A stretch of 63,607 nt of DNA, counting the filler, from Pelomyxa schiedti (lineage: Eukaryota > Protista > Evosea): assembly GCA_020536535.1 (NCBI GenBank). It is 10 parts of 10 records of this genome, joined end to end, with 100 filler letters (N's around TTAATTAATTAA, not from the genome) between each part and the next. Parts side by side here need not be neighbours in the genome. Positions count along the whole stretch, not along the records: positions 15,680 to 35,465 come from JAHLWZ010000160.1; 9 more parts are not named here. The stretch is one strand, 5' to 3'. The translations under genes were made by a program, and so were the position numbers. This document shows positions 7,621 through 27,500 of the stretch, piece by piece (the stretch's first letter is position 1; each line of letters begins with the position of its first letter). The notes below the pieces were generated by a model. It searched no databases, was not told the DNA's origin, and saw nothing but the letters and a program-made list of their open reading frames with translations.

Positions 7621-7983
7621 GTGATTGTGAGCGCTCCTCATCAGCGGTGTGTTGAACATGATGGCATCACACAAGCCCAGAAGATAATTTCAATGGGTGA
7701 GTTCACCAAAGATTCTGTTGTGGGGTGCCTTGCAAACCCATTAGTATTGAGATCAAGCAAAGCAGTCAAGTGGTTGATCACACACTTCCAGCTTGACCAT
7801 GACAACATTACATCTGAACACAGCAGGATTCTGTTCAACCTAATTTCCAATGGAAAAGAGAGCTGTGCAGAGTGGGTCATCAACAAGTTCCACATCACCC
7901 TGGATGAGGTAATACAACAGCAACAAAAGAAATCAGCTGGGAATAATGTCCGACGGAGGACCTTAATGCCGAAGACCCTGTGA
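7621..7983 (+). pseudogene. Fragment of a helical (pseudo-ankyrin-like) repeat protein
   Basis: KAVKWLITHFQL and SCAEWVINKFHI repeats; no clear start or upstream exons. Confidence 0.35.
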
Positions 7984-8080
7984 AGCCAGCTGTCTCTCAT
8001 TCTTCATCTCCTTGTCATTGAACGCAGTCGGAATTTTTTTTTTTTTTGTTCGGGAAGAAAAACCATACAGTGTTTGTTGC

Positions 8081-10110
8081 TCAGAAGAGTGTTGTTGGGC
8101 TGGGTTGGTTGTCTATGGGGAATGAGGGGGGAATTTCTTCTTCGTCATCCGCTGCGTCGCTAGGCGGTACTGTATCATCATCATTGGCTGCATGTGCGGC
8201 AAGGGCCCTCTGTACCTCCGGCCTCATGGCACTGTTGGGTATTGGTGCCTGGTCGTCGTCGTCATAATCATTGCCATTGTCTTTGTAGTCCACTGCGGTG
8301 GCCGTGTGGTCAGTGTTGTCGTGGGTATGTACCATGTGATGGTGATGTGGGCAGACATTGTCGGCTGGTGAGGGTTTGAAATGCACACAGGGGCCTCCAC
8401 AAGGAGAATGGTGCGGGCCTGGGGAGTGGCATGCGTGAGTGTGCGGAGAAGTACACTGGTGAGGGCAAGCGTTCTGGTTGTGGGCGGCATGCTTGAACTC
8501 AACGGGGCGGTGGACGGGTGGCGGGACACTGGGGGGGTGTGTTGGTGTTGGGTGGTTCTGTGTAGGACTTTTCTTCACTACTCGGGAAGGGAGGTGGGCT
8601 GATGAAGGTGTGTCCGAGTATTGTGTAGTTGCCCTCATTGGGGTGTGTGGTGGAGAGACTGGCGCATCATAATGCGTTGGTGGGGACAGATCGCCCCTGT
8701 ACCTTTTTGGTGCTGGAGGCTCAGCTTGCATATCAGCTTGTATATCATCTTGCATAGCTGCATCCCCACTTGGTGAAGATGTGACAGAACGAGATGGAGC
8801 AACGTAACTGCCAGTGTCTGCAGAAAGTTGCTGGGCATTATTGAACATGCTCCCTTGAGATGGTGACTGTTTCATTGAATATGCTGTAAATGAGTGGGTA
8901 GGGGAAACTACTGGCTCCACAATTTAGCCTGTGGATTTAAAGAAAGCTAACCTGTTGAGTCCTTTGTCTCTGAGTGTATTGAAGCTTGAGAAGATGTCTG
9001 CAAAGACTTAAGAAAATTATTTTTTTAAAGAAAAGAACTACCGTAGTGGAACTTGGTTCATTGATAATAGTGGCAATGACGAAATTCGCCTCGAAGGCGG
9101 CTTGCTTGGCACTAATCACTATGGGTTGTTGGGCTTGGCCTGTGCAAGAAATTCCAAGTGAGACTTGTACTTGGATGCTATCGCAAAAAAGAAGAACAGA
9201 ACGTAAATCCTACGCTCAATGTGGGAAAACCAAGAGGGAAGAGAAGAGAGTACCTTGACAGAGACAATTGCAGAAATAGGCCCACACGTGGAATCTCGGA
9301 AAGATGCTTGTATTTGATTTTGAAGGTAATCCAATGTTTGGTCATAAGCAATAAGGTTTTGGACTTTTTCTATGGCCATATCACCCAGATAGCTGCCTTC
9401 ATAAGACCCAACAAAAATCTATAAATATATACCTTCTCACGCCCAGACTGTCAACTGCAGTTACAAGGATAGCTTCTTCCACTCGTTTGTCGAACCTCTG
9501 TAAACAATCCAAAAGAACTTGCGGACGAAACGAGAGCACGGCAAGGTAGTCGTCATCATGCTTGCATTCCAGAGGCTGAGAAGAACTCAGTTTGGAAAAT
9601 AAAGTGCTGTGTATACATCACAGTGCACTAAGTTGAGAGTTCTGATTTTCTTCAATCCATTTTTGGTTGTCACTTGAAGTTCCAAATTTTGCTTGCTGTC
9701 CAGAAATTTAAGAGATACTGTGTCGAGCTAAGTGATAGTTTTAGTTGGTCTTGCATCCAAATGGCAGGTATGATGAAAGGTCGCTACCTGATTCGGAGTT
9801 CTAAATCCTGCCATGAGTGGTTTTGTTTTTACAGTGTAACGAGGTTCCGAGAGTCGGGATGTCCTCGCGTAGTGATCAAACGCAGTGGATCGGATTTTCA
9901 CGTGGAAAAAACAGGTCCGTTCACCATTAAGCCCGCGAAGTGTAATGCCCTCATCACGTACGATAAACAACACGTCTTCGGAGATCTAAGGCAACATCGT
10001 AAACCAAAATGAACACTTTGTCTCCCATGCCAACAGTCCACCTTCCCCAATGACAAGAAGCACTTGGTTAAAAGCGATATCGACGCGGGGTCTGAGACAT
10101 AGAGCTCCAT
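8081..10110 (-). CDS. RAD9: Rad9 subunit of the 9-1-1 checkpoint clamp with long disordered C-tail (multi-exon)
   Basis: Spliced KCFLSLGKISEDVLFIVRDEGITLRGLNGERTCFFHVKIRSTAFDHY, YTVKTKPLMAGFR, QVTTKNGLKKIRTLNL, RPQVLLDCLQRFDKRVEEAIL and AFEANFVIATI follow Rad9 PCNA-fold motifs in order. Last exon is ORF 8081-8920. Confidence 0.8.
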
Positions 10111-10844
10111 CTTTACCGGTTTATTTTTTATTTTTTGTTTTTCTTTGAGGAAAAGGCAGATGGAGAATTCTGGAAGAGAAACAGTTTGCCTTCACACGAA
10201 ACTTGTTATTTCCCTGCGTGGGCATTGGTGATTTTGGCTCTGACCGACTCAACTGGTTCTCTGAGGTTTCGTTGAAATTGATCAAAAGGGCGATAAAGAC
10301 CAAGCCAGTATCCGTAAGGCTGCACCCCACTTGCGGTTCTGTGGGAGCGCGCAAGCACGGACTTGTGGGAAAGAAAGTCGGCCTCTGAGGGTTGAAATGT
10401 GGATTTGGACAAGTGGCCTTGGCAAAGAAGTAGCTGCTTCGACCAGCATAACAAATGGAGGAATTAGAAACACTAAATTAGGATAAAATAGTGGATACAG
10501 TACAGTAAGTATTGGAAAACAAAGCTCCCTAACTATAACCAAAACAACCAGTTAAAAAAAAATGTATGAAATTTTCTAGAAGGTCAGCTTCATTTGTGAA
10601 AGCTTCTTTAGTACAAAGCCAAGGTTTTAAGACAACGTATTATTAGAGAAAAGCACAGGAAACGTGACAAGCTCCGTAGCTTGTTGTCTGCGAAGATGAA
10701 ACTGTCGCGGCAAAAAACACTAGCGCCTGTGATTATGCGGAAACTTGTGGGATCGAAAAAGGGAAAAACAGAAGGAAATTTCCTTTTGTTTGTTGAAATG
10801 CTGGCTCTTGTTTTAACACTACACACAAAGGTGGGTTTTGTTTT

Positions 10845-13800
10845 TCACATTCCACGTGATACAAGTGCTTGTTGCAGTTCATTTGACAAAGCACGTACTC
10901 TCTTCTTTGTTTCTTCCGGTAAATTGCTTGATAGTAGGGCACTAATGTCCCCAATTGGCAGTGGCATGCAGCGCAATGTTTGATTGGCCTTAGTTTTCAG
11001 TTAGAAAAAGTTAAAAAGGGGTTAGGGGCTGTGGGTTACTTTGAGGGCACTGCACATGGCTGTGAATCCAAGAATACTGGTTGTGTTGTCATCCCAGTAG
11101 ACTGATGTGAGTCTTGTATTGACCTGGTAGCATAAATTAGGAATTTACTTCTTTCTGTGGGAGTGTATGGCAGTGCAGTACCTGTAGTACTTTGGCAAGT
11201 GCAACGGCTCCGGGATTGCCCATAGCGTGGCCAGAGACATCAATCTCTGTAATGGATTCGTTTGTTGCCAGGGAATGCAAGAAAGGCAGCATAAGTTTTG
11301 ACATTTGCTGCGTAGCTTTGGTGCCTCCCCCGATTTTTAGGGCTGAGTGTGTGTCAGAATGGAATGGTTTTAGACAAGGAGCAACATTCAAGGGGGCAAT
11401 CAGAGGCAATAAGTTTCTGCAGTGCCCGAATTACATCGGTTCTTGGTCGAGTGCCTTTTCCAAAACAGCCATTCATGTTCAAGGAAAGTAGTGTTGTGTT
11501 TAACATGATTCCTTCAACTACCAGGATGATCCCGTCATCTCCCTAAAAGCAGTGAGTAACGCATTCCTAAATTTGCCTACGCACAAGTTCTGTTCCGCAT
11601 AGGTCGAGCGTTGTTATACTGGTTAATTTTGGGGCTGTTCATAATAGTGAGAAGGGTAGTTGAATTATCCAAAGACCTATATCTCGAAGGATTTTGGCTG
11701 CAACTAGTCCCAAGTCACACCCTCGTAGCATAAGATTAATGGTTCCCTCACGTGGTGGTGATTGAAGGAGATCCTAGAACTTTTAGAAGAAGTTAACCAC
11801 AACAAGATTTACCAAGATTATTTTCTCGGAGGCAATAGATTCGGACAGATCCAAACTAGCCAACGCAGGTATTGAAATAATTTGTGCCAGATGGGCTGCC
11901 TCCTCTGGTTTGGAAATTTTTACTGTAGAGAGTTTGTTAATTTGGCTTTGTGAGGTTGAGAGCAACATCCACTGGCTATCAGTGTTTTAATGTGTCGGCA
12001 TCCCTGTGAAATTGCGCCAAACACAGAGGCTATTTTCGCAGGAGCTATGTTGGTGTTTCTTAGGTTCAGGTAAGTCAGTGGATTTCCTGTCATCCCCAGC
12101 CACTGAGCAAGCTGGGTTGTATTATCGCCTATCTTATTGCCAGATATATCCAAGTGTGTTAGTGTATTGACTCCACGTATCTGGTTGTTATTGTTTGTTA
12201 CTTCTCATTTTCTTATGAAGGAACGAAATACCTTCGGAACACTTATCAGCATGGCCCAAGCTGCCAAGACGGCTTTTGGATTGACAAGTGTATCTGCCAT
12301 TTCGAGGGTCACAACACCGTGAGGTGCTTTGGAAGTGTTGAGGAAGCTCGATAAAGAGCCAATAACTTTGTCATCAAAGACAGGATTAGAGCTCACATCT
12401 AAGTGTTGTATCCGACACTATTGTGTTTTGATTAATTGGTGCAAACATAAAGAAATTTCGAAAAAAAACCTGTGGATTGGACTCCATAGCGTCAAAAAGC
12501 CCTGCCCAGTTACTAGCCGAAAGACTTACATTTACAAGTGTAAGGGCAGTTAAGTGTGTGTTGAAGTGTAGCATGTCAGCTAGGGTAGTAAAGGTTTTTT
12601 CTAATTTTCTATCTTTGGTCAGCAGCCAAGTGAAATGAGTGTTGTGCCTGCAGTTATCTAAGAATTTCTGTAAAGACATGGTACAGCACAAACCAAAGAG
12701 CTTGAAAAACGGGAACGAGTTCCGAAGTAGCCATAGCAACAGTGTCACCACCAGATTCCTCTGCACAAAATTAATATTGGAAAATAGGGGACACAATGTA
12801 CCAGAGAAGAAGTGGTGGAGATTGAATTTGGTGTTATCGGTATAGAGATTCTCAACATCCCAACAGAGGGCCATATTACATGCAACATTGTGATAGTTAC
12901 ATAAAGATTTATATGCATCCACAAATCCACTACATTTTTTCTCGACTATAAGTTGGAGGTGAGCAATAATTAAAAAGAGGGGGAAAAAAGGGGAAGTTGC
13001 AGGCCTGCTTGAATAGGGCTTATCCTTGTAGCAGGAGAGATATTTAACCTAAACCTGAAAGCATCTGGAATCATTCCAAAATTCTGTTCAAAAGCTCTTC
13101 GGACACTGCCCAAAATATCATCGGCTTGATCACTTTCTCCAGCAATTTCACTCTCTGTGAAAATGAGTCGGACCTGACCATATTAGCGAGGAGAATTATG
13201 GCAAAGTGAAAAACCTCTCTTGGAGTGAGGCTGACAATCTCCTTAAGCTCTACAAAGTGACCTTCAGCCCCGACCTTGATAGAGGCATTAAATTGAAATG
13301 CAACAAATATACTCTGTGGTACCTTGCCGCCTTTTTTCACTGTGAAGATTCTGTTCAGGCCAACAACAAGTGTTAACTTATCGGGGCCCTTTTTGCCAGG
13401 CACATTCAAGTAGCCAATATATGAGGCCTCCTCTTTGCGTTGCATAAGAAGGTCTTTTACATGTTCTAGAAATGGTAAGAACAAGGGCGAGTGGGGAAGT
13501 AATAGCAAAACATACTCTGAGCAGAGGATCCTAACGCAAAGGCAAATGAAACCTTGTTCGAATACGACCCAAGGTCATCTAGTTTTTTCTCAAACACTAG
13601 GTGAAGTCAGTGTTTGTACACAAGGGAAAATGAATAAATACTTTTTCTATCCAAATCTACAGAAATCAAGCTACTGATATGCTCTTTATGCTGAAAGAGT
13701 AGTAGGTGCAATAAATGCAAATCTTTCAGGCTTACAGTACAAATATCGGAATCTGAGTTTATGAGACTGGTCTCCAGCAAGAAAAGACACACCAATTACA

Positions 13801-16136: not shown

Positions 16137-17835
16137 ATGGACAAGCAAAAACTAGCGAGGATGGCGGAGAGCGTGCGCATCGGAGGCAAGGGCATGGCCA
16201 GGAGGAAGACCAAGGTCCACCACAAGAACAACGAGAACGACGACAAGCGCATACAGCAGAGCCTCAAGTCGCTCAAGGTGAGCCCAATCACCGGCATCGA
16301 GGAGGTAGTCATCCAGAAGCAGGACGACACCATCATCAAGTTCGCCAACCCTAAAGGTGTGTGTGTGTGTGCGTTGCCACTTGCTATCTCTAGAAACATA
16401 GAAGTGTTGGTTTTTATGCGGTTTGCGGGCGAGTATTGGCATTTATCTACTGGGAATTATGTTTATCATCTTGTTTAATATGTTTTTTAATAATGATAAT
16501 AAAAAAAAAAAACTTTTTCACCTTATTTAACACGCTTTCGTTTTACAGTCCAAGCCTCGGTTGAAGCCAATACATACGTTGTTACCGGCAAAGCCGAAAC
16601 ACGCGGTACCTAGTCTCTTTGAAAGAAACCATCCCCGCTAATTTTATTTAAGCTATGACTCCCGAGGAAAAGACCAAGCAACTTCAAGAAATGATTGGTG
16701 GAATGATCAACAACCTCACACCCGAGCAATTCAAGCAAATGGCTGCTTCTCTTGCAAAGCCCAATGCAGCTGCTGAGGCCGCTGCCGCTGCAACTCCAGC
16801 TGCAACAACACCCGAAACTCCAGCTCCAGCAACCACCACACCCACCCCTGCACCTGCTGAAGAAGCAAAGCCCAAGAAAANNNNNNNNNNNNNNNNNNNN
16901 NNNNNNNNNNNNNNNNNNNNNNNNNNNNNNNNNNNNNNNNNNNNNNNNNNNNNNNNNNNNNNNNNNNNNNNNNNNNNNNNCCCAATGCAGCTGCTGAGGC
17001 CGCTGCCGCTGCAACTCCAGCTGCAACAACACCCGAAACTCCAGCTCCAGCAACCACCACACCCACCCCTGCACCTGCTGAAGAAGCAAAGCCCAAGAAA
17101 AAAGCAACCAGAGGCAAGAAGGGAAAGAAGGTAGCCGAGCCGGTTGCCGAAAAAACCGAGGAAGCAAAGCCCGAAGAAGGTAAACCCGCCACTGATAAGC
17201 CAGCCGAGGAAGCAAAGCCAAAAGCGGAACCCAAGAAAACACCCAAAAAAACCAAGGCCGAGAAGAAGCCCGCTCCCGAGAAAAAAGCTGAGAAACCAGC
17301 ACCCAAGAAGGGTGAGAAGAAACCAGCAGCCGAGAAGCCAGCCGCTGAGAAGAAGCCCGCAGCAAAGAAACCAGCCGCCGAGAAAAAGCCAGCTGCAGAG
17401 GGAAAGAAGAAGCCCGCGACCGAGAAGCCAGCAGCTAAGAAACCAGCAGCGGAGAAGCCCGCTGCAGAGAAGAAGCCCGCGACCGAGAAGCCAGCACCCA
17501 AGGCCGAGAAGCCCGCTGCAGAGAAAAAGCCAGCAGCCGAGAAGCCCGCTGCCAAGAAACCAGCAGCCGAGAAGAAGCCAGCCGCTGAGAAGCCAAAGGC
17601 CGAGAAGAAGCCCGCCGCTGAGAAGAAGCCAGCCGCAGAGAAGCCCAAGGCCGAGAAGCCCGCTGCAGAGAAAAAGCCCGCCACAGAGAAGCCCAAGGCC
17701 GAGAAGCCCGCTGCTGAGAAAAAGCCCGCTGCTGAGAAGAAGCCAGCCGCGGAGAAGCCAGCGGAAAAGAGCCCCGCTGCCGAGAAGCCCAAGGCCGAGA
17801 CCAAGGCTGCTGCTGAGCCTGCAAAGAAAGACTAA
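16137..17835 (+). CDS. BTF3: Nascent polypeptide-associated complex beta subunit with Lys/Pro/Ala/Glu-rich C-terminal extension
   Basis: [29 protein letters not shown]...GIEEV...KFANPK|[18 protein letters not shown]; two introns; KPAAEK repeats to TAA at 17835. The gap 16881-16980 is flanked by a duplicated overlap. Confidence 0.92.
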
Positions 17836-18144
17836 ACTTAATAAACAAGATCGCGTAACCCAAAACAAAGTGGTTTTCCACAACAACAACTGGCGCTAAA
17901 CGCTTGTGTTGTTTCATTCTACCTAATTGAGAAGGTTCTTTCCCGAATTCTCCTACGTCCCGATGCCATTCGAAATTCCCCCGATCGTTCAAATATCTAG
18001 ATCGGTTCCTGTTTGGCGCAGGCAAACAACCTCGCTTTTGCAAACAACCTCGCTTTTTCAGATCTTTTTTCATAAACATTTTTTGTTTCATAAAAACCCC
18101 AAAAGCTACTTGGGGCTTTCCACTCGGGAAGAGACACTGTCACA

Positions 18145-20424
18145 ATGTCTACGGAAACAGCAACGTGTCCGCCATCGGTCGAAGACGTCAAGCTCTGTCC
18201 CGCCTCGCCGCCGCCTGTTATGGGATCCCCTCCTTCCTCTGCCGAGACCGCCACCGACGCGAGGCCCCGTCCCATAACCAAGATTGCTATCGTGGCAGGC
18301 GCCGAGGAGGGCGAGAAGATTTTCGAACCCCCGAGGGCTCGGCACTACACGATCGACGGTAACGAAGCCACAATGCATTTTCTCAGAAGCTACGTGAAGC
18401 ATGAAAGGGTAATGTTTTTTAACTTAAAAAGCAGGAATATGTTCTGTTGTACACTAACAGTAGTAATGTTTTTGTTGAAATTAAGTCACACTCAATATTC
18501 AAACAGAACTCACAAGTGGCCAAAGATACTATGGAACCTGACAACACACCTTCTCTGGCAGGTGTTTATCTAAAACAGTTCTTGAAGAGAGAAAGGAACC
18601 TGCAGTGCGAAGTATTGCACCGTTTCGTTCCTAGTAAGCCCAAAGAGCTGGAAGACCTCGTGAGGGATGCGTCAATCCTTCTGATCAGCACGTCGATGAT
18701 GATCTCCTGGGAGTTTCCTGAAAAGATCGCAGCCACTGCAAGAGCCATGAACCCCTCGCTGACAATTATTGGAGGAGGAACCGGTGTTTACAAGTATCTC
18801 TCCCACTTCCATTGTCTTGCTCTAATTGTACTCAGGAAGTACCACACAAAACTATTGCTGGATTCTGGGTCTTCTGGGCTCACAGATTTCGAGGCGTCGG
18901 TGTTGAGGCACCACAATAAATTATTTGTGCACCCGAAAGTAGAATCGGCCTACGATTTTCTTGTCATTAGTCACTCAGGTGAAAATACATTGCTTAAGCT
19001 TCTTGATGCTTTGGCTGCTGTACGTCTCCGCACTTCCCCTTCGTTTTGAACTCTGATTCCTTGATAAGGGAACTGATGTATGGAAAACATTGCCAAACTT
19101 GTGCTGGTATGACAAAGTAATGCAGAATTTCCACATCAATGAAGGTTTTCTTTTCCACACTTCCTTATTTTTTTCTAAGGAAACATATAGTTGTTGACGA
19201 AATAGGGACCGATGTCTACGTTGACTGGTCACAGGAGAACCTACCGCCTGGGATACTTTACCCTGTTCAAGTCAGTCAGGGTTGCCCGTTCAGGTTAGAC
19301 CACATCCTGAATGCCAATTTGTGGGATAACGTTCAATAACAGATGCGGATTCTGTGACTTTGCCACTATTGCACCAAAAATAAAGCAAGCTCCACTTGAT
19401 GTGATATTTGACATGTTGGAACGAGTACCTCTTGAGGATGGCCGCCGTAACGTAAGGCTAATGCAAGTTCAATTGATTGTTGATCACCCTCAATAGGTCT
19501 ATTTCACAAATGAGAACTTGTTGTACAACAAGAAATTCACAATGGAGTTTCTCACTGAAATGATCAAGAGGGACCTTAAAATTAAGTGGCGTTCATTCCT
19601 GAGGTACCGGCCTTGTTCCGTACCCCAATCGCTGACACCATTTTCAGAATTGACAGTATACAAGAACCGGAAGTAGCCGACCTCGTGAAGCAAGCCGGCT
19701 GCGTTTCAGCCCTTCTGGGAGTAGAGAGTGCAGATCCAACAATTTTGGCAAATATGCACAAGCACTGTACCACAGAGGTGTGTTTCTCAAATAAGTTTAT
19801 GTGTCCTCACACCAACAAAGAAAATTGTGCGGTGTATCTCGCTTCTGGCTGAGCGCGGAATTACTGCGACGGTGTTCCTTCTGTTTGGGTATCCTGGTGA
19901 GACTGAGGAGACTGTAAGGAGAACTATTGAAGTGATGAATAACCTTCCCGATGTTGGAATTATTGTCCTCAGAGTACAGAACCCCAATCTCTTCTTACAC
20001 TCAATTCGCTGCAGCTGTTCAATTTATGTGTTCTTCCAATGTCCCCTCTTTCGTCCCCAGAAGAAAGAACCCGATTTGGACTGAAAGGCCTTGGTAACAT
20101 GTGGGAACACGCCACAATGAACAGTGATACTGCCTACAAAGTCACTCAGAATTCCTACGATAACCTGAGAATGACCCTGTTCGCGTCAAACATCGACGAA
20201 AGGATGGTTTCACATAAACTCACTGACGAACAGCTCAGGGACTTTTACCTCACAAGAAACATTGTGCGCAAAGAATCCCGTTCCAATTCAATTTTGACTA
20301 ACACATATGTATGTTCGAACAGCTCTATCACAGGCAAGCCAATGTACCAATGATTGGGGGTGATACATACCCACCTACTGAGCAGCTGTTTGAGCACTTG
20401 TTGCACCTTGTTTCTGTCTCTTAA
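18145..20424 (+). CDS. Cobalamin-binding-type radical SAM protein, PhpK/BchE-like (about 10 introns)
   Basis: CxxxCxxC (GCPFR|CGFC) split by intron 19294-19342. N-domain PSLAGVYL, LLISTSM, TIIGGG, SGENTL. Core KQAGCVSALLGVESAD, LFGYPGETEETVRRT, GLKGLGNMWEHATM. Confidence 0.85.
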
Positions 20425-20439
20425 TTATTATTATTTAAG

Positions 20440-21357
20440 TACTACCAGTAATTCCGTAACTGGTTTATTAAGACAAGTAGAATTTTTGCTCACAATATTT
20501 ATTGTACACATCTTCCCTACAAAGGGATTGATTTCACCACAGAGCTCTAGCACACAACATTTTTGCATTACCTTCTACAGCATTGAAGCATTTGGTGTGG
20601 ATGATAAAACCACAGTCTGCATTTTTGTGAGGTTTTGAGTATATATTTAAGAAGGCAGCAATACCATCACAACGGTAGGCTTGGCGGCCTAGGCTAGGAA
20701 CACTTTCATCTTTTTACGGAAGGGTCAGAACATACTGGAGATTATATAATACTTACGGCACCAAGCACATGTAGCGGAAGAAATTGATATTTTGGTAAAG
20801 TTGTGGCATGTTATCTGTCTCTCTTGAGTCTAGAAAAACCGGCAGTAAGCACTGGTAAAATGCGGAAATAAAGTACAGCCGCACCTTTTGGATAGCAAAG
20901 TTAATGGAAGATATCCACTCTTGCATCAGAGCCGGAGTGTCAGCCATCAGGAAATAGTCCCTGGAGTTAGTCTTCACCATGAAGACATAGCCTCTCATTT
21001 CTATGAAAGAAAGAGTACTGTTCAGTGACTGAGAGTAATTACATTAGCGAAGAGTGGAACCTGTGGTTGAAGCAGAACAACCCGGAAAATATTGCATGCA
21101 AGTCACACCTCCTCTAAATGATATCATTCCTTGTGGGTGTGCAGACTGCACAGTGTCATTAATTTACATATTTCATGCGTTAAAAAAAAAATAAGAGGGA
21201 AGTAGCAAAACCAAAAACAAAAAAAAACTGCCACCTTTTCATTCTTGGAGTAGTATAATGACATGGTAGTGAGAACGAACCACCTGCGTTTGTGTGTCCT
21301 TCTCAGACCCCCTTCTTTCACTAACCAACCATTCTTCACCACAATTCTAGCGTCCAT
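20440..21357 (-). CDS. Small PH + C1 domain protein (multi-exon; 3' end approximate)
   Basis: KNGWLVKEGGLRRTHKRRWFVL...EWISSI (PH). Spliced HNFTKISISSATCAWCHES...AYRCDDCGFIIHTKC...ELC (C1 zinc ligands). Confidence 0.8.
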
Positions 21358-21681
21358 ATGCACAAGCCAAATACAATTAAAAAATAGACACACTCTACAC
21401 TACTCCCCTGCGTGGCCCTTCGGCACCCAGATAGAATTAAATGTTTCTGATCATCACATCAATCAAACGATCAGGAAACAATCTAATCTCCTCACTTTCT
21501 CCAACATGGGAAAGAAAAACCCAGGTAATTGGTGGGCCCTCAACTTGGTTGGAGTTAACACAGGAAAATTTGGTGGACCCCCAACTTGGTGGCATTCAAA
21601 ACCACCGAAAACAAACCAAAACTACACCTAGTAAAAACAAACCAAGTAGGCAACAACAGGTCCACACCATCTAACACCACA

Positions 21682-22227
21682 ATGCACCCCACTTCTTCTC
21701 CACTTCATCCGGCACAACCTGGGTCAGGGCTCCCACCAGGGACTGTCCTCCCCTACGCGGGCATCAACACCCCACAGGGCTTCCTCCCCTGCGACGGCCG
21801 CCTGTTCCACGTCCTGGACTACCCCGCGCTGTTCTCGGCCATTGGGACCACCTACGGGAGCGGCGACCAGGGCCGCGAGTTCCGGCTGCCCGACATGCGG
21901 TGCCGCTTCCCCCTGGGCTGCCTGCCCACCCCCGCGGACCCCAGCTCCCCCGCCATCCCGCCAGGCAGCGGGGGCCTCACCCAGCGGGCGCTGGGGGCCA
22001 CCGGCGGGGAGGAGCAGCACCACCTCACGATGCAGGAGATGCCCGCGCACTCGCACACGCCGGTGGGGGCGGACCTGGGGTGCATCGGCGGAGGGGCCAG
22101 GGTGTGGCTGGTCGGGGGGCAGTACATTAACAATGGGGCCAAGTACGGGACAGGGACCAGCGGGGAGGACCACCCCCACAACACAATGCCCCCGTTCCTG
22201 GGCCTCAACTTCATCATCAAGGTGTAG
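21682..22227 (+). CDS. Phage tail-collar domain protein (MdpB-like), intronless
   Basis: PPGTVLPYAG...PQGFLPCDG...YPALFSAIGTTYG...FRLPDMRCRFPLG; GGEEQHHLTMQEMPAHSH; HNTMPPFLGLNFIIK. Confidence 0.92.
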   Translation: MHPTSSPLHPAQPGSGLPPGTVLPYAGINTPQGFLPCDGRLFHVLDYPALFSAIGTTYGSGDQGREFRLPDMRCRFPLGCLPTPADPSSPAIPPGSGGLTQRALGATGGEEQHHLTMQEMPAHSHTPVGADLGCIGGGARVWLVGGQYINNGAKYGTGTSGEDHPHNTMPPFLGLNFIIKV

Positions 22228-24569: not shown

Positions 24570-27500
24570 ATGGCTTGGAGCGCAGTTAAAGCGAAACCAC
24601 CCAATGGACTCACGTCGACAATGATAAACCACGGCTGCGTTTACGTAGCCACCAAGTTCTATACGTTTGGGGGTTTGTTGCCTGAAGGCCCGACAACAAA
24701 GATGTTCATGGCAGATCCGAGTGCGTTTTTTCTTTGTTTTATTATTATTACAATTCTCTTGACCCTCAGACCGGGACTGATTTGTAAATTTAAACGTTGA
24801 TATAATAATAACATAACTTTGGCACAGTATAAATGTGCAACTTCTAACGTCTCATGCAGCTGGGCTTGGACAATGGACAAATATCGCTGCATCGGGCATG
24901 ACGCCCTCTGCGAGGCACGGTCACTCCATGGAGAAGCTAGGTCCCGCTAAGGTGTGAAGTTTCATCATAGACTCCCACATTCCTCACATTATTTGGCAGA
25001 TTTTAGTAATTGGTGGGAGTTGTGATATAGATTGTAAGAATATTTCCAACGAAATCTGGCAGATGAATACAGGTTAACTATCTGTTGTTATTTATGTGCC
25101 TCACAACCGCAGGTTTAAAATCTTGGGCAAAACCTCGAGTAGTTGGGGAACAGATTCCTCCCCTCGCCTTTCATCGGTATGGCTTGCTGATCATTTACTC
25201 CAAAAATGTAATTTCTGGCAGGTCGGTCACAGTGGGAACAAACATTTGGATCTTTGGTGGTTTGACACCTGCAGGGCCTGTCAACGATCTGTATTGCATC
25301 AACACAAGTATGACAATAAAGGCAAAGCCATCTCACCCTCGTTTCAGATAAGATGTCTTGTGCTAAGGTCGCTGCTACTGGAGATCTCCCCTCCCCCCGT
25401 GCTCAGCATGCACTTGTTGGGGTCGGTGACAAATTGTTTGTGTTTGGTGGATACAATGGTTCTACTCTTTTCAACGATACTTACATGTTCAACACTGGTG
25501 GGTAGAACCAAAGTTCATTCCTGGTACTAACTATTTAAAGCCACAAGTGTGTGGACAAGATGCGCAGATGGAGGGTCCCCTCCATGCCCACGGGCAAACC
25601 ATGCATGTGACGCGGTAGGAAACGTACTGTATGTCAGTGGTGGGAGGAGTGATACTGGCATCCTTGGTGATTTGTACGGCTATGACACTGGTTCTCTCCT
25701 CATCCTGAAAGCCTTTATTCATTATTGTAGGAACAAACCAGTGGGCATTCTATCCTGAGGGACCTGGCCCTTCGCCAAGAGAAGGCCACGTGCTCGTTAA
25801 CAATGGTTCCGCGGCTCTTGTTTCTATTGGGGGTCCGGAGGCCTGGATTTTATGGCAACTGAGTGTTGGTATGGCGGTTGCCTTTGTTGTTTCTTTCTCA
25901 CCTTTTTTAGCCAAACTGCACCCAGGAACACCACCGCCATCGTCACATGTCTCAGTTCCAACAAGCTCTACATCGACCACTACTTCCACAAGTATGCTCT
26001 AATTGGCTTCATTCGGGCTTAATTTCTACAGGTACTACAACATCAGAAGCTACCAGAAGGATGCAAGCTGAAGCTGCCGCCGCAAAAATCAAAATTGAAG
26101 AAGCTGCGGCCGCCAAAAGAAAAGCTGATGAAGATGCTGCGGCCGCCAAAAGGAAGGCTGATGAAGAGGCTGCAGTTGCGGCCGCCAAAAGAAAAGCAGA
26201 TGAAGACGCTGCAGCAGCCAAAAGAAAAGCGGATGAAGACGCGGCAGCCAAAAGAAAAGCTGACGAAGAAGCAGCTGCAGCTACCAAAAAGAAAGCTGAT
26301 GAAGCTGCCTTGGCCAAAAGAAAGGCAGATGAAGAAGCTGCGGCTGCCAAAAGAAAGGCCGATGAAGAAGCTGCGGCTGCCAAAAGGAAAGCTGATGAAG
26401 ATGCTGCAGCGGCCAAAAGAAAAGCGGATGAAGCAGCTGCGGCTGCCAAAAGGAAAGCCGATGAAGAAGCTGCTGCTGCAGCCAAAAGAAAAGCTGACGA
26501 AGATTCTGCCGCAGCGGCCAAAAGGAAGGCCGATGAAGATACCGCAGCTGCCAAAAAGAAGGCGGACGACGATGCAGCCGCCAAAAGAAAGGCAGATGAA
26601 GACTCTGCTGCCAAAAGGAAAGCCGACGACGAGGCCGCAGCCGCCAAAAGAAAGGCCGATGAGGCCGCAACTGCCGCCAAAAAGAAAGCGGATGAAGAAG
26701 CTGCTGCTGCAAAGAAGAAAGCTGAAGATGACGCAGCTGCTAAGAGAAAAGCTGATGAAGAAGCTGCAACAAAAAGAAAAGCCGAGGAAGAAGCAAGAAG
26801 AAAATCAGAAGAGGATGCTCGTGCTGCTGCGAGAAAAAAAGCAGATGAGGAAGCTGCAGCCAAGAGAAAAGCTGAAGATGATGCACGCAAAAAAGCTTTG
26901 GAGGAAGCTGCAGTCAAAAAGCCTATTTCCATAATGGCTATGAAAATGCCTGGTCAACCCCTTGGGTAAGTATATTTTCAATTACTTTTATGTTAACTCC
27001 CAAAAGACAAAAATCAGCGGAAGACAGAGCAAGAGAAGCAGAAGCCAAAGTTGCTGCTTTAGAACAAGAGTAACTTCAACCGAATTGTTGTATTCTCTCT
27101 AATCTTTCCCAAGATTACGTGAAGCCAGAGAGAAAATTGCACAATTAGAAGAAAGAATAACAGAACTGACATCTGGCAACGTAGCGCCTCAGGTACCTAA
27201 GTTTTTCCTTCCTTGTTTGTACTTACTATGACATAGGATTCATCTGCACCTCCACCTCCACCACCGCCGCCGCCACCTCCAGGCCCAAAGTTGCATAAAG
27301 TCCCAATTACGATTGTTGCTGTCGACACCCCAAGTGAAGATACCTCCGGAGCACCACCTCCACCTCCAGGTAATGGTAGGACTCATTTCGCCTACTAACT
27401 AATTGTAGGTGGTCCACCTCCTCCTCCTCCGCCGCCACCTCCTCCCGGCCCAAAGGCACCAAAACCTGTTGGTGGAACAGATGCGCTTCTTGCATCCATC

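Follow-up and report, generated by a model that had tools for sequence, protein, structure and literature searches.

The DNA analysed here, called the window below, is a stretch of 63,607 nucleotides (nt) from Pelomyxa schiedti (assembly GCA_020536535.1). The gene under study occupies positions 18145–20424 on the plus strand of the window and encodes a radical S-adenosylmethionine (SAM) enzyme of predicted class B architecture. It lies on a contig of 19,786 base pairs (contig C160), present in full in the window, in an assembly of 52.4 Mb and 5337 contigs. Its neighbours on the contig, which encode a NAC/BTF3 protein, a uridine kinase and a GH31 protein, are eukaryotic in character and split by introns, and the GC content of the gene (0.44–0.49) agrees with that of the rest of the contig. 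Three-frame translation of positions 18100–20500 shows coding segments that change frame at GT..AG borders. Splice joining of 11 exons across 10 GT..AG introns gives an open reading frame (ORF) of 1764 nt, which encodes 587 amino acids (aa) without an internal stop. The parts of the gene are as follows.

18145–20424, plus strand: whole gene, 587-aa protein of predicted class B radical SAM type; TAA stop at 20422–20424
18145–18408, plus strand: exon 1, Pro/Ser-rich N-terminal extension of ~45 aa, then Rossmann strand 1 (KIAIVAG, residues 46–52)
18507–18793, plus strand: exon 2, core of the B12-binding-like domain with PSLAGVYL, ISTSMM and IIGGGTG
18836–19019, plus strand: exon 3, remainder of the N-terminal domain
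19069–19144, plus strand: exon 4, linker from the N-terminal domain to the barrel
19191–19293, plus strand: exon 5, ending in GCPF and the first two bases of R305; C302 at 19283–19285
19294–19342, plus strand: intron 5, 49 nt, GT..AG, splitting CxxxCxxC as C302-P-F-R / C306-G-F-C309
19343–19451, plus strand: exon 6, C306 (19344–19346) and C309 (19353–19355) of the [4Fe-4S] motif
19497–19603, plus strand: exon 7, VYFTNENL motif, residues 342–349
19648–19777, plus strand: exon 8, radical SAM core with GVESAD and NMHKHC
19821–19973, plus strand: exon 9, radical SAM core with FGYPGET
20015–20263, plus strand: exon 10, family-specific C-terminal domain with SPL..EERTRFGLKGLGNMWEHATM
20323–20424, plus strand: exon 11, C-terminal helix and TAA, aligning with the C-termini of paralogues

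The original prediction, made from the sequence alone, had proposed about ten introns, one of them inside the CPFR/CGFC motif, and a continuous spliced ORF combining a B12-binding-like domain with a radical SAM barrel. The gene model bears this out, with ten introns, of which intron 5 splits the motif, and a 587-aa product of class B layout. The motifs named in that prediction were each located in the spliced protein: PSLAGVYL at residues 103–110, FTNENL, there said to replace the usual form of the motif, at residues 344–349, and the C-terminal motif that runs from SPL to WEHATM at residues 481–506 (SPLSSPEERTRFGLKGLGNMWEHATM). From the first to the tenth, the introns measure 98, 42, 49, 46, 49, 45, 44, 43, 41 and 59 nt. 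Intron 2 (18794–18835) is in frame and stop-free; its retention would insert 14 residues while keeping the ORF, and read-through of this intron is seen as a 14-aa insert in the family alignment. In comparison with the aligned paralogues described below, the Pro/Ser-rich N-terminal extension is unique to the window copy.

Transcription and splicing were assessed in four runs of single-cell RNA-seq (X1–X4; labelled "protist metagenome", 2023), which belong to one study and fit the P. schiedti transcriptomes of PMC10579272. Contigs from these runs were aligned to positions 18000–20600 and skip all ten introns exactly, with 0 mismatches. Most splice junctions are present in two to four of the runs; the junction 18408/18507 was found in X2, the skip of intron 2 in X1 and the skip of intron 5 in X1, X2 and X3. 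The sole RNA contig that spans 18794–18835 has intron 2 spliced out. Genomic DNA in an RNA library cannot give such joints, and the gene is therefore transcribed and spliced as modelled, which bears out the spliceosomal introns of the original prediction. Coverage extends from 18231 to 20431, and because it begins only at 18231 we infer the start codon at 18145. The gene is a nuclear, expressed gene of P. schiedti, a genome with 7.43 introns per gene, 98% of them of the GT-AG type (PMC8887013).

To place the protein in a family, the window gene was searched with profiles exon by exon, while whole-protein profile scores were obtained from full-length Pelomyxa paralogues; the joined 587-aa protein was compared locally by BLAST, MAFFT and IQ-TREE. 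The Radical_SAM and B12-binding profiles match the exons weakly. For Radical_SAM (PF04055), exon 8 scores 16.9 bits and exon 9 scores 21 bits, each as a single exon against a gathering threshold of 29.5, whereas the paralogues reach 60–79 bits, above threshold, and fall slightly below threshold for B12-binding. The best family is the PhpK/BcpD model TIGR04479 of NCBIfam, whose matches are collinear in exons 2, 8, 9 and 10 (profile positions 62–153, 329–366, 370–408 and 425–473), with 37.8, 31.9 and 24.8 bits in exons 8, 9 and 10, respectively. The exons sum to ~115 bits, and the full-length paralogues score 166–203 bits over profile positions ~32–468 of 504, compared with at most 86 bits for other families. 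As the family cut-off is 600 bits, neither sum nor score reaches membership, and the protein is therefore a relative of the PhpK/BcpD family and not a member. The likeness to PhpK that had been noted originally thus stands insofar as TIGR04479 is the nearest curated family, but the real sisters belong to a bacterial clade drawn mainly from the Planctomycetes–Verrucomicrobia–Chlamydiae (PVC) group.

The joined protein is 39–41% identical to its paralogues over nearly the full length, 33% identical to the bacterial proteins P0012 and P0013, and 27% identical to a near-threshold protein of the PhpK family. In a family alignment of 33 sequences it keeps all 16 columns that are invariant and 23 of the 27 that are nearly so; most of the four changes are conservative, such as T to S and D to E. 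The CxxxCxxC motif is present as C302, C306 and C309 in GCPFRCGFCDF, and its C, C, F and C columns are invariant across the 33 relatives. Also invariant are the GG pair of the N-terminal domain and a G and a W in the exon 10 region, where H, T and M are nearly so. The motif FTN(D/E)NL occurs in every eukaryotic copy, compared with mostly FTDDNL in the bacterial sisters, and is thus a marker of the eukaryotic clade. With PhpK/BcpD proteins the window gene shares a layout of three domains and, near the C-terminus, the W.H.TM region; it differs in its separate clade in the tree, its eukaryotic host, its introns and the lack of a detected phosphonate pathway.

Among the standard eukaryotic radical SAM families, Elp3, CDKAL1/CDK5RAP1 (of the MiaB type) and TYW1 have the radical SAM barrel and CxxxCxxC in common with the window gene. 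MiaB, RimO and MtaB models score 12–55 bits compared with 166–203 bits for TIGR04479, and the Elp3 match is confined to a 70-residue stretch of the core (E ~4e-4). Membership in Elp3, MiaB/CDKAL1 or TYW1 was rejected, and by these comparisons the window gene lies outside the ancestral eukaryotic radical SAM families.

The fold was examined with an AlphaFold2 model of the paralogue P0002, which is ~40% identical to the window protein; the model was built with a 33-row alignment and has a predicted local distance difference test (pLDDT) score of 91 and a predicted template modelling score of 0.91. The top Foldseek matches of this model are TsrM, MgmA, CysS, TokK, AprD4 and OxsB, with E values of 1e-17 to 1e-14. 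In VIA-align comparisons the Z scores are 22.8 for MgmA, 22.7 for AprD4, 22.2 for TsrM, 21.9 for OxsB, 21.8 for CysS and 18.8 for TokK, and the alignments begin at model residue ~8, so that the N-terminal Rossmann domain is included. The model thus supports a class B architecture, with an N-terminal Rossmann domain of B12 type, a radical SAM barrel and a C-terminal domain, and at the level of the fold a B12-type domain is found in the paralogue, where the original prediction had placed one in the window gene. The whole-chain match to TsrM (6WTE), TokK (7KDX), CysS (9N1B-D), MgmA (9CCB) and OxsB (5UL4) comes with an identity of only 13–19%, and by sequence the solved structures were matched in the core only. 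The substrates of solved class B enzymes include Trp, a carbapenem, an aminobenzoate-type thioester and a glutamine of methyl-coenzyme M reductase, and they offer no hint as to the substrate of the amoeba enzyme. The N-terminal Rossmann domain and barrel are laid out in the same manner in AprD4 (6FD2), a radical SAM 1,2-diol dehydratase, which is reported to be cobalamin-independent and is non-methylating.

The origin of the gene was addressed with relatives gathered from one genome per prokaryotic species, of which hundreds were found. The closest bacterial relatives come from metagenome-assembled genomes (MAGs) of Kiritimatiellia, Lentisphaerae/Victivallales, Verrucomicrobiota, Planctomycetaceae, Syntrophorhabdaceae and Elusimicrobia. 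In the main maximum likelihood tree (47 rows, 538 columns, LG+C20), eight eukaryote-type rows form one clade with support of 100/100, and this clade, on a long stem (1.13), lies inside a clade with 17 bacterial rows that is likewise supported at 100/100. Two quick trees concur with the main tree. Two PhpK-like proteins, P0014 with 575 bits and P0015 with 431 bits, are placed in another clade, and other groups also lie outside. Together with the introns shared among paralogues and the expression described above, this nesting bears out the earlier suggestion of an old, domesticated transfer. The simplest reading of the tree is that an anaerobic bacterium donated the gene once and that introns were gained and copies multiplied afterwards; the living relatives of the putative donor are mostly of the PVC group (Lentisphaerota, Kiritimatiellota, Verrucomicrobiota).

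The nearest relatives of the amoeba genes are thus the members of the bacterial sister clade (P0012, P0013 and the loci L017–L031), which are ~33% identical over the full length and share GCPFRC.FCDF, FT(D/N)(D/E)NL, GFPGET and W.H.TM with them. The bacterial sisters are intronless and usually single-copy, whereas the amoeba clade is expanded, sits on a long stem and has Asn for the first Asp of FTDDNL. An Elusimicrobia MAG (L031) carries two sister-clade copies within 3 kb on opposite strands (7977–9596 and 10489–12069), and duplication of the gene is therefore not confined to the amoeba.

Profile and protein searches of the Pelomyxa genome detected ~13 dispersed loci of the family with exon-by-exon matches, on contigs C160, C252, C5118, C526, C966, C562, C475, C589, C423, C173, C694, C870 and C798. 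Intron positions were mapped by placing four annotated paralogues on their loci and aligning them with the window gene. All ten intron positions recur, within one residue, in at least three paralogues, including the intron that splits CPF(R/K)/CGFC (alignment column 327/328), which all of the mapped paralogues have in common; two extra introns in the paralogues are absent from the window gene. Relative to the nearest paralogue, on C252, the rough proportions of differing sites are 0.82 for synonymous sites (pS), which are saturated, and 0.26 for nonsynonymous sites (pN). The underlying high-scoring segment pairs run through introns and synonymous divergence (dS) is saturated, and the usable result is that pN is far below pS. 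The shared intron positions and the saturated synonymous sites indicate that the introns predate the duplications and that the gene has long been present in the lineage.

Copies of the gene were also seen in other eukaryote-type sequences. On a 283-kb metagenome contig (ENA ERZ21831265; L010:6800–8760) there is a homologue from a second intron-rich eukaryote, with a GC content of 40% and introns of ~31–37 nt. Five or six of its exon borders coincide with intron positions of the window gene, and the gene caller read through the in-frame intron 2 there as well. On a 14.8-kb contig (Logan SRR22387900; L009:6159–7925) there is an intronless 588-aa homologue (P0007), which is nested among the Pelomyxa paralogues beside P0006 and P0011. 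This contig is gene-dense and intron-free, and encodes a cyclin, a metallophosphatase and an AEP_C962R and UL52-type primase; two of the neighbours, the primase and a 598-aa ORF, had no homologue in the Pelomyxa genome when searched there. The contig may stem from a giant virus or a distant eukaryote with few introns, with which pelomyxids would have exchanged the gene. The eukaryotic clade is rare in public data, as an exhaustive search with the N-terminal domain returned only 9 proteins among 1.84 billion representatives; the bacterial sisters were missed by this search, which therefore does not prove that the family is absent elsewhere, for example in other Archamoebae. Word-based searching is lossy, as three of our own query rows were not returned. 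Scans of IMG/VR and JGI metagenomes found no relative; they used motifs that introns interrupt in the eukaryotic copies, and intron-bearing genes were therefore out of their reach.

The surroundings of the bacterial sister genes offer a possible indication of the substrate. Of 16 sister-clade loci, 5 have a polyprenyl_synt–DUF116 fusion nearby, 3 a Prenyltrans toroid protein and 1 a squalene-hopene cyclase, and the same isoprenoid genes were found at 0 of 65 loci of other clades. At L030:4604–9497, and also at L017, L019, L020, L026 and L012, the sister genes stand in apparent operons with isoprenoid genes; the hosts of these loci are MAGs of Victivallales, Verrucomicrobiota, Planctomycetaceae and Kiritimatiellia. 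From their gene content the operons look like a putative, uncharacterised isoprenoid-modifying cassette. With genes for polyprenyl synthase and terpene-cyclase-like proteins as frequent neighbours of the sister genes, an isoprenoid lipid seems likelier than a phosphinate, and we put an isoprenoid forward as a doubtful candidate for the substrate of the amoeba enzyme.

By analogy with characterised class B enzymes, cobalamin-dependent methylation by the window protein appears to us somewhat more probable than not. C302, C306 and C309 form the site of the [4Fe-4S] cluster in a partial TIM barrel; once reduced, the cluster would cleave SAM to give a 5'-deoxyadenosyl radical, and this radical would take a hydrogen atom from the substrate. 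The substrate radical so formed would be methylated by methyl-cob(III)alamin, and the cobalamin would regain a methyl group from a second SAM. The source of the cobamide would have to be the prey or the prokaryotic endosymbionts of the amoeba.

Other features of the contig were recorded on the plus strand. The upstream gene (16137–17835) has a NAC/BTF3 domain and, behind it, an extended tail of lysine-rich repeats of the KPAAEKK type; an assembly gap of N's breaks the gene near 16.9 kb. At 25947–26969 there is a 340-aa ORF that consists almost entirely of repeats of the AAAKRKADEE type, with low complexity and a strong AT skew. Between these, 1.2 kb downstream of the gene under study, lies an uninterrupted 213-aa ORF (21586–22227) with a match of 74 bits to the Phage Tail Collar Domain; it lies in a sharply bounded island of 71% GC in a contig of ~42% GC and could be either another gene of foreign origin or a local artefact of the assembly.

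Such a GC-rich ORF next to the gene, and the assembly of the genome from single cells packed with prokaryotes (PMC10579272), are what might be expected if the sequence had come from an endosymbiont or a prey organism, as a bacterial contaminant or through chimeric assembly. This account is refuted by the removal of ten spliceosomal introns in RNA. The eukaryotic, intron-split flanking genes on the same contig rule out bacterial contamination, the GC content of the gene fits the contig, and twelve more intron-split copies lie on other contigs, which leaves the account with practically no chance of being correct. It is also very improbable that the gene is a decaying paralogue that is transcribed yet no longer encodes an enzyme. 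The many paralogues, the low-complexity N-terminal extension and the longest branch in the subclade (0.9) would be consistent with decay, but the ORF is intact over 11 exons, the invariant and near-invariant columns are kept to the extent given above, and pN is far below pS relative to the nearest paralogue. Even a little less credible is a true P-methyltransferase of the PhpK/BcpD family acting on a phosphinate intermediate of a phosphonate natural product. While TIGR04479 is the best family for every matching exon and for all paralogues, the paralogue scores remain far from its cut-off, the PhpK-like P0014 and P0015 stand in another clade, no phosphonate genes were seen beside the bacterial sisters, and no phosphoenolpyruvate (PEP) mutase was found in the genome. 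The search for PEP mutase in this incomplete genome gave a single TIGR02320 exon match, with 42.7 bits against a cut-off of 319.55, and it contains EDQ..KRCGH, the motif of isocitrate-lyase/PrpB-type lyases.

The alternative that deserves most attention is a class-B-like enzyme that works without cobalamin, in which, as in AprD4, the Rossmann domain would serve only in structure or in substrate binding and the radical reaction would transfer no methyl group, being for instance a dehydration, rearrangement, cyclisation or C–C bond formation. Several observations in its favour count at the same time against the interpretation of the gene as a cobalamin-dependent methylase of bacterial origin. 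Among solved structures, AprD4 gives the best match by sequence (E 2.4e-29, in the core only) and shares first place by fold (Z 22.7), and the Pfam B12-binding match in exon 2 is under threshold (PF02310; E 1.5e-3, 18.8 bits against a cut-off of 32.1). Since AprD4, which is reported to be cobalamin-free, matches the fold equally well, cobalamin use and methylation are something that we infer and do not read from the structure. The same interpretation is further weakened by the Z scores of 18–19 that MiaB and RimO also reach against the P0002 model, and by the derivation of the fold evidence from a paralogue and not from the window protein itself. The piece encoded by exons 2–3, folded alone with a pLDDT of 82, had no PDB match below E 0.03; as this piece is without the first strand from exon 1 and carries the retained 14-residue intron 2, the missing match does not amount to a negative result for the domain. 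Every RNA record comes from a single study, and the support for the exact bacterial sister is just 60–77. As for the substrate, the isoprenoid context was seen in 6 of 16 bacterial loci only, the neighbours at the remaining loci are mutually unrelated (ParB, isochorismatase, DUF2400, M48 peptidase, ferredoxin), and polyprenyl synthase–DUF116, the toroid protein and squalene-hopene cyclase were not detected in the Pelomyxa genome. The canonical DxHxxG motif is absent from the alignment, which would suit an enzyme without cobalamin; to our knowledge, most class B radical SAM enzymes also lack it. Against the cobalamin-free enzyme, the nearest curated family consists of methyltransferases, the B12-domain fingerprints, an SxL-like motif (ISTS/ISTT) and GG, are conserved clade-wide, and the host uses cobalamin through the reported B12-dependent methionine synthase MetH (PMC8887013). 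We consider the cobalamin-free enzyme possible but rather unlikely.

On the whole, the gene, its fold and its origin are very probably as described here, and the explanation that we judge best, with reasonable though far from full confidence, is a once-transferred, intron-bearing and expanded radical SAM enzyme of class B type that is a probable methylase. The ten introns, the retention of the catalytic residues, the expression and the ~13 copies argue that the family has a genuine function, and a diversified one, in an anaerobe that relies on prokaryotic partners for its corrinoids. Class B radical SAM chemistry is regarded as prokaryotic and sensitive to oxygen, and, as far as we know, no class B enzyme is among the radical SAM enzymes recognised in eukaryotes (lipoyl synthase, MOCS1, viperin, Elp3, TYW1, MiaB-type). 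The GenBank entries of the family carry the generic name "radical SAM protein". Our literature search found no publication on the family or on class B radical SAM enzymes in Archamoebae, and the family is not mentioned in the P. schiedti studies PMC10579272 and PMC8887013.

These results provide a defined set of genes for asking what role radical methylation plays in a eukaryote. They also offer a clean case of intron gain after lateral transfer, with positions conserved over paralogues and two species, and direct attention to an uncharacterised bacterial clade with isoprenoid-linked operons as a route to the substrate. P. schiedti is an anaerobic archamoeba that houses a methanogen, which leads us to a speculation that we regard as quite unlikely in its full form: that in pelomyxids a single gene of bacterial origin became a eukaryote-specific family of 13 radical SAM methylases that depend on cobamides, which would take corrinoids from methanogenic and syntrophic endosymbionts and tailor isoprenoid lipids anaerobically. 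If this were true, oxygen-independent C-methylation or other tailoring would replace oxygen-dependent lipid chemistry that is impossible for an anaerobe, the host would be metabolically dependent on its symbionts through vitamin B12, and the family would be the first class B radical SAM toolkit to have diversified in a eukaryotic cytosol.

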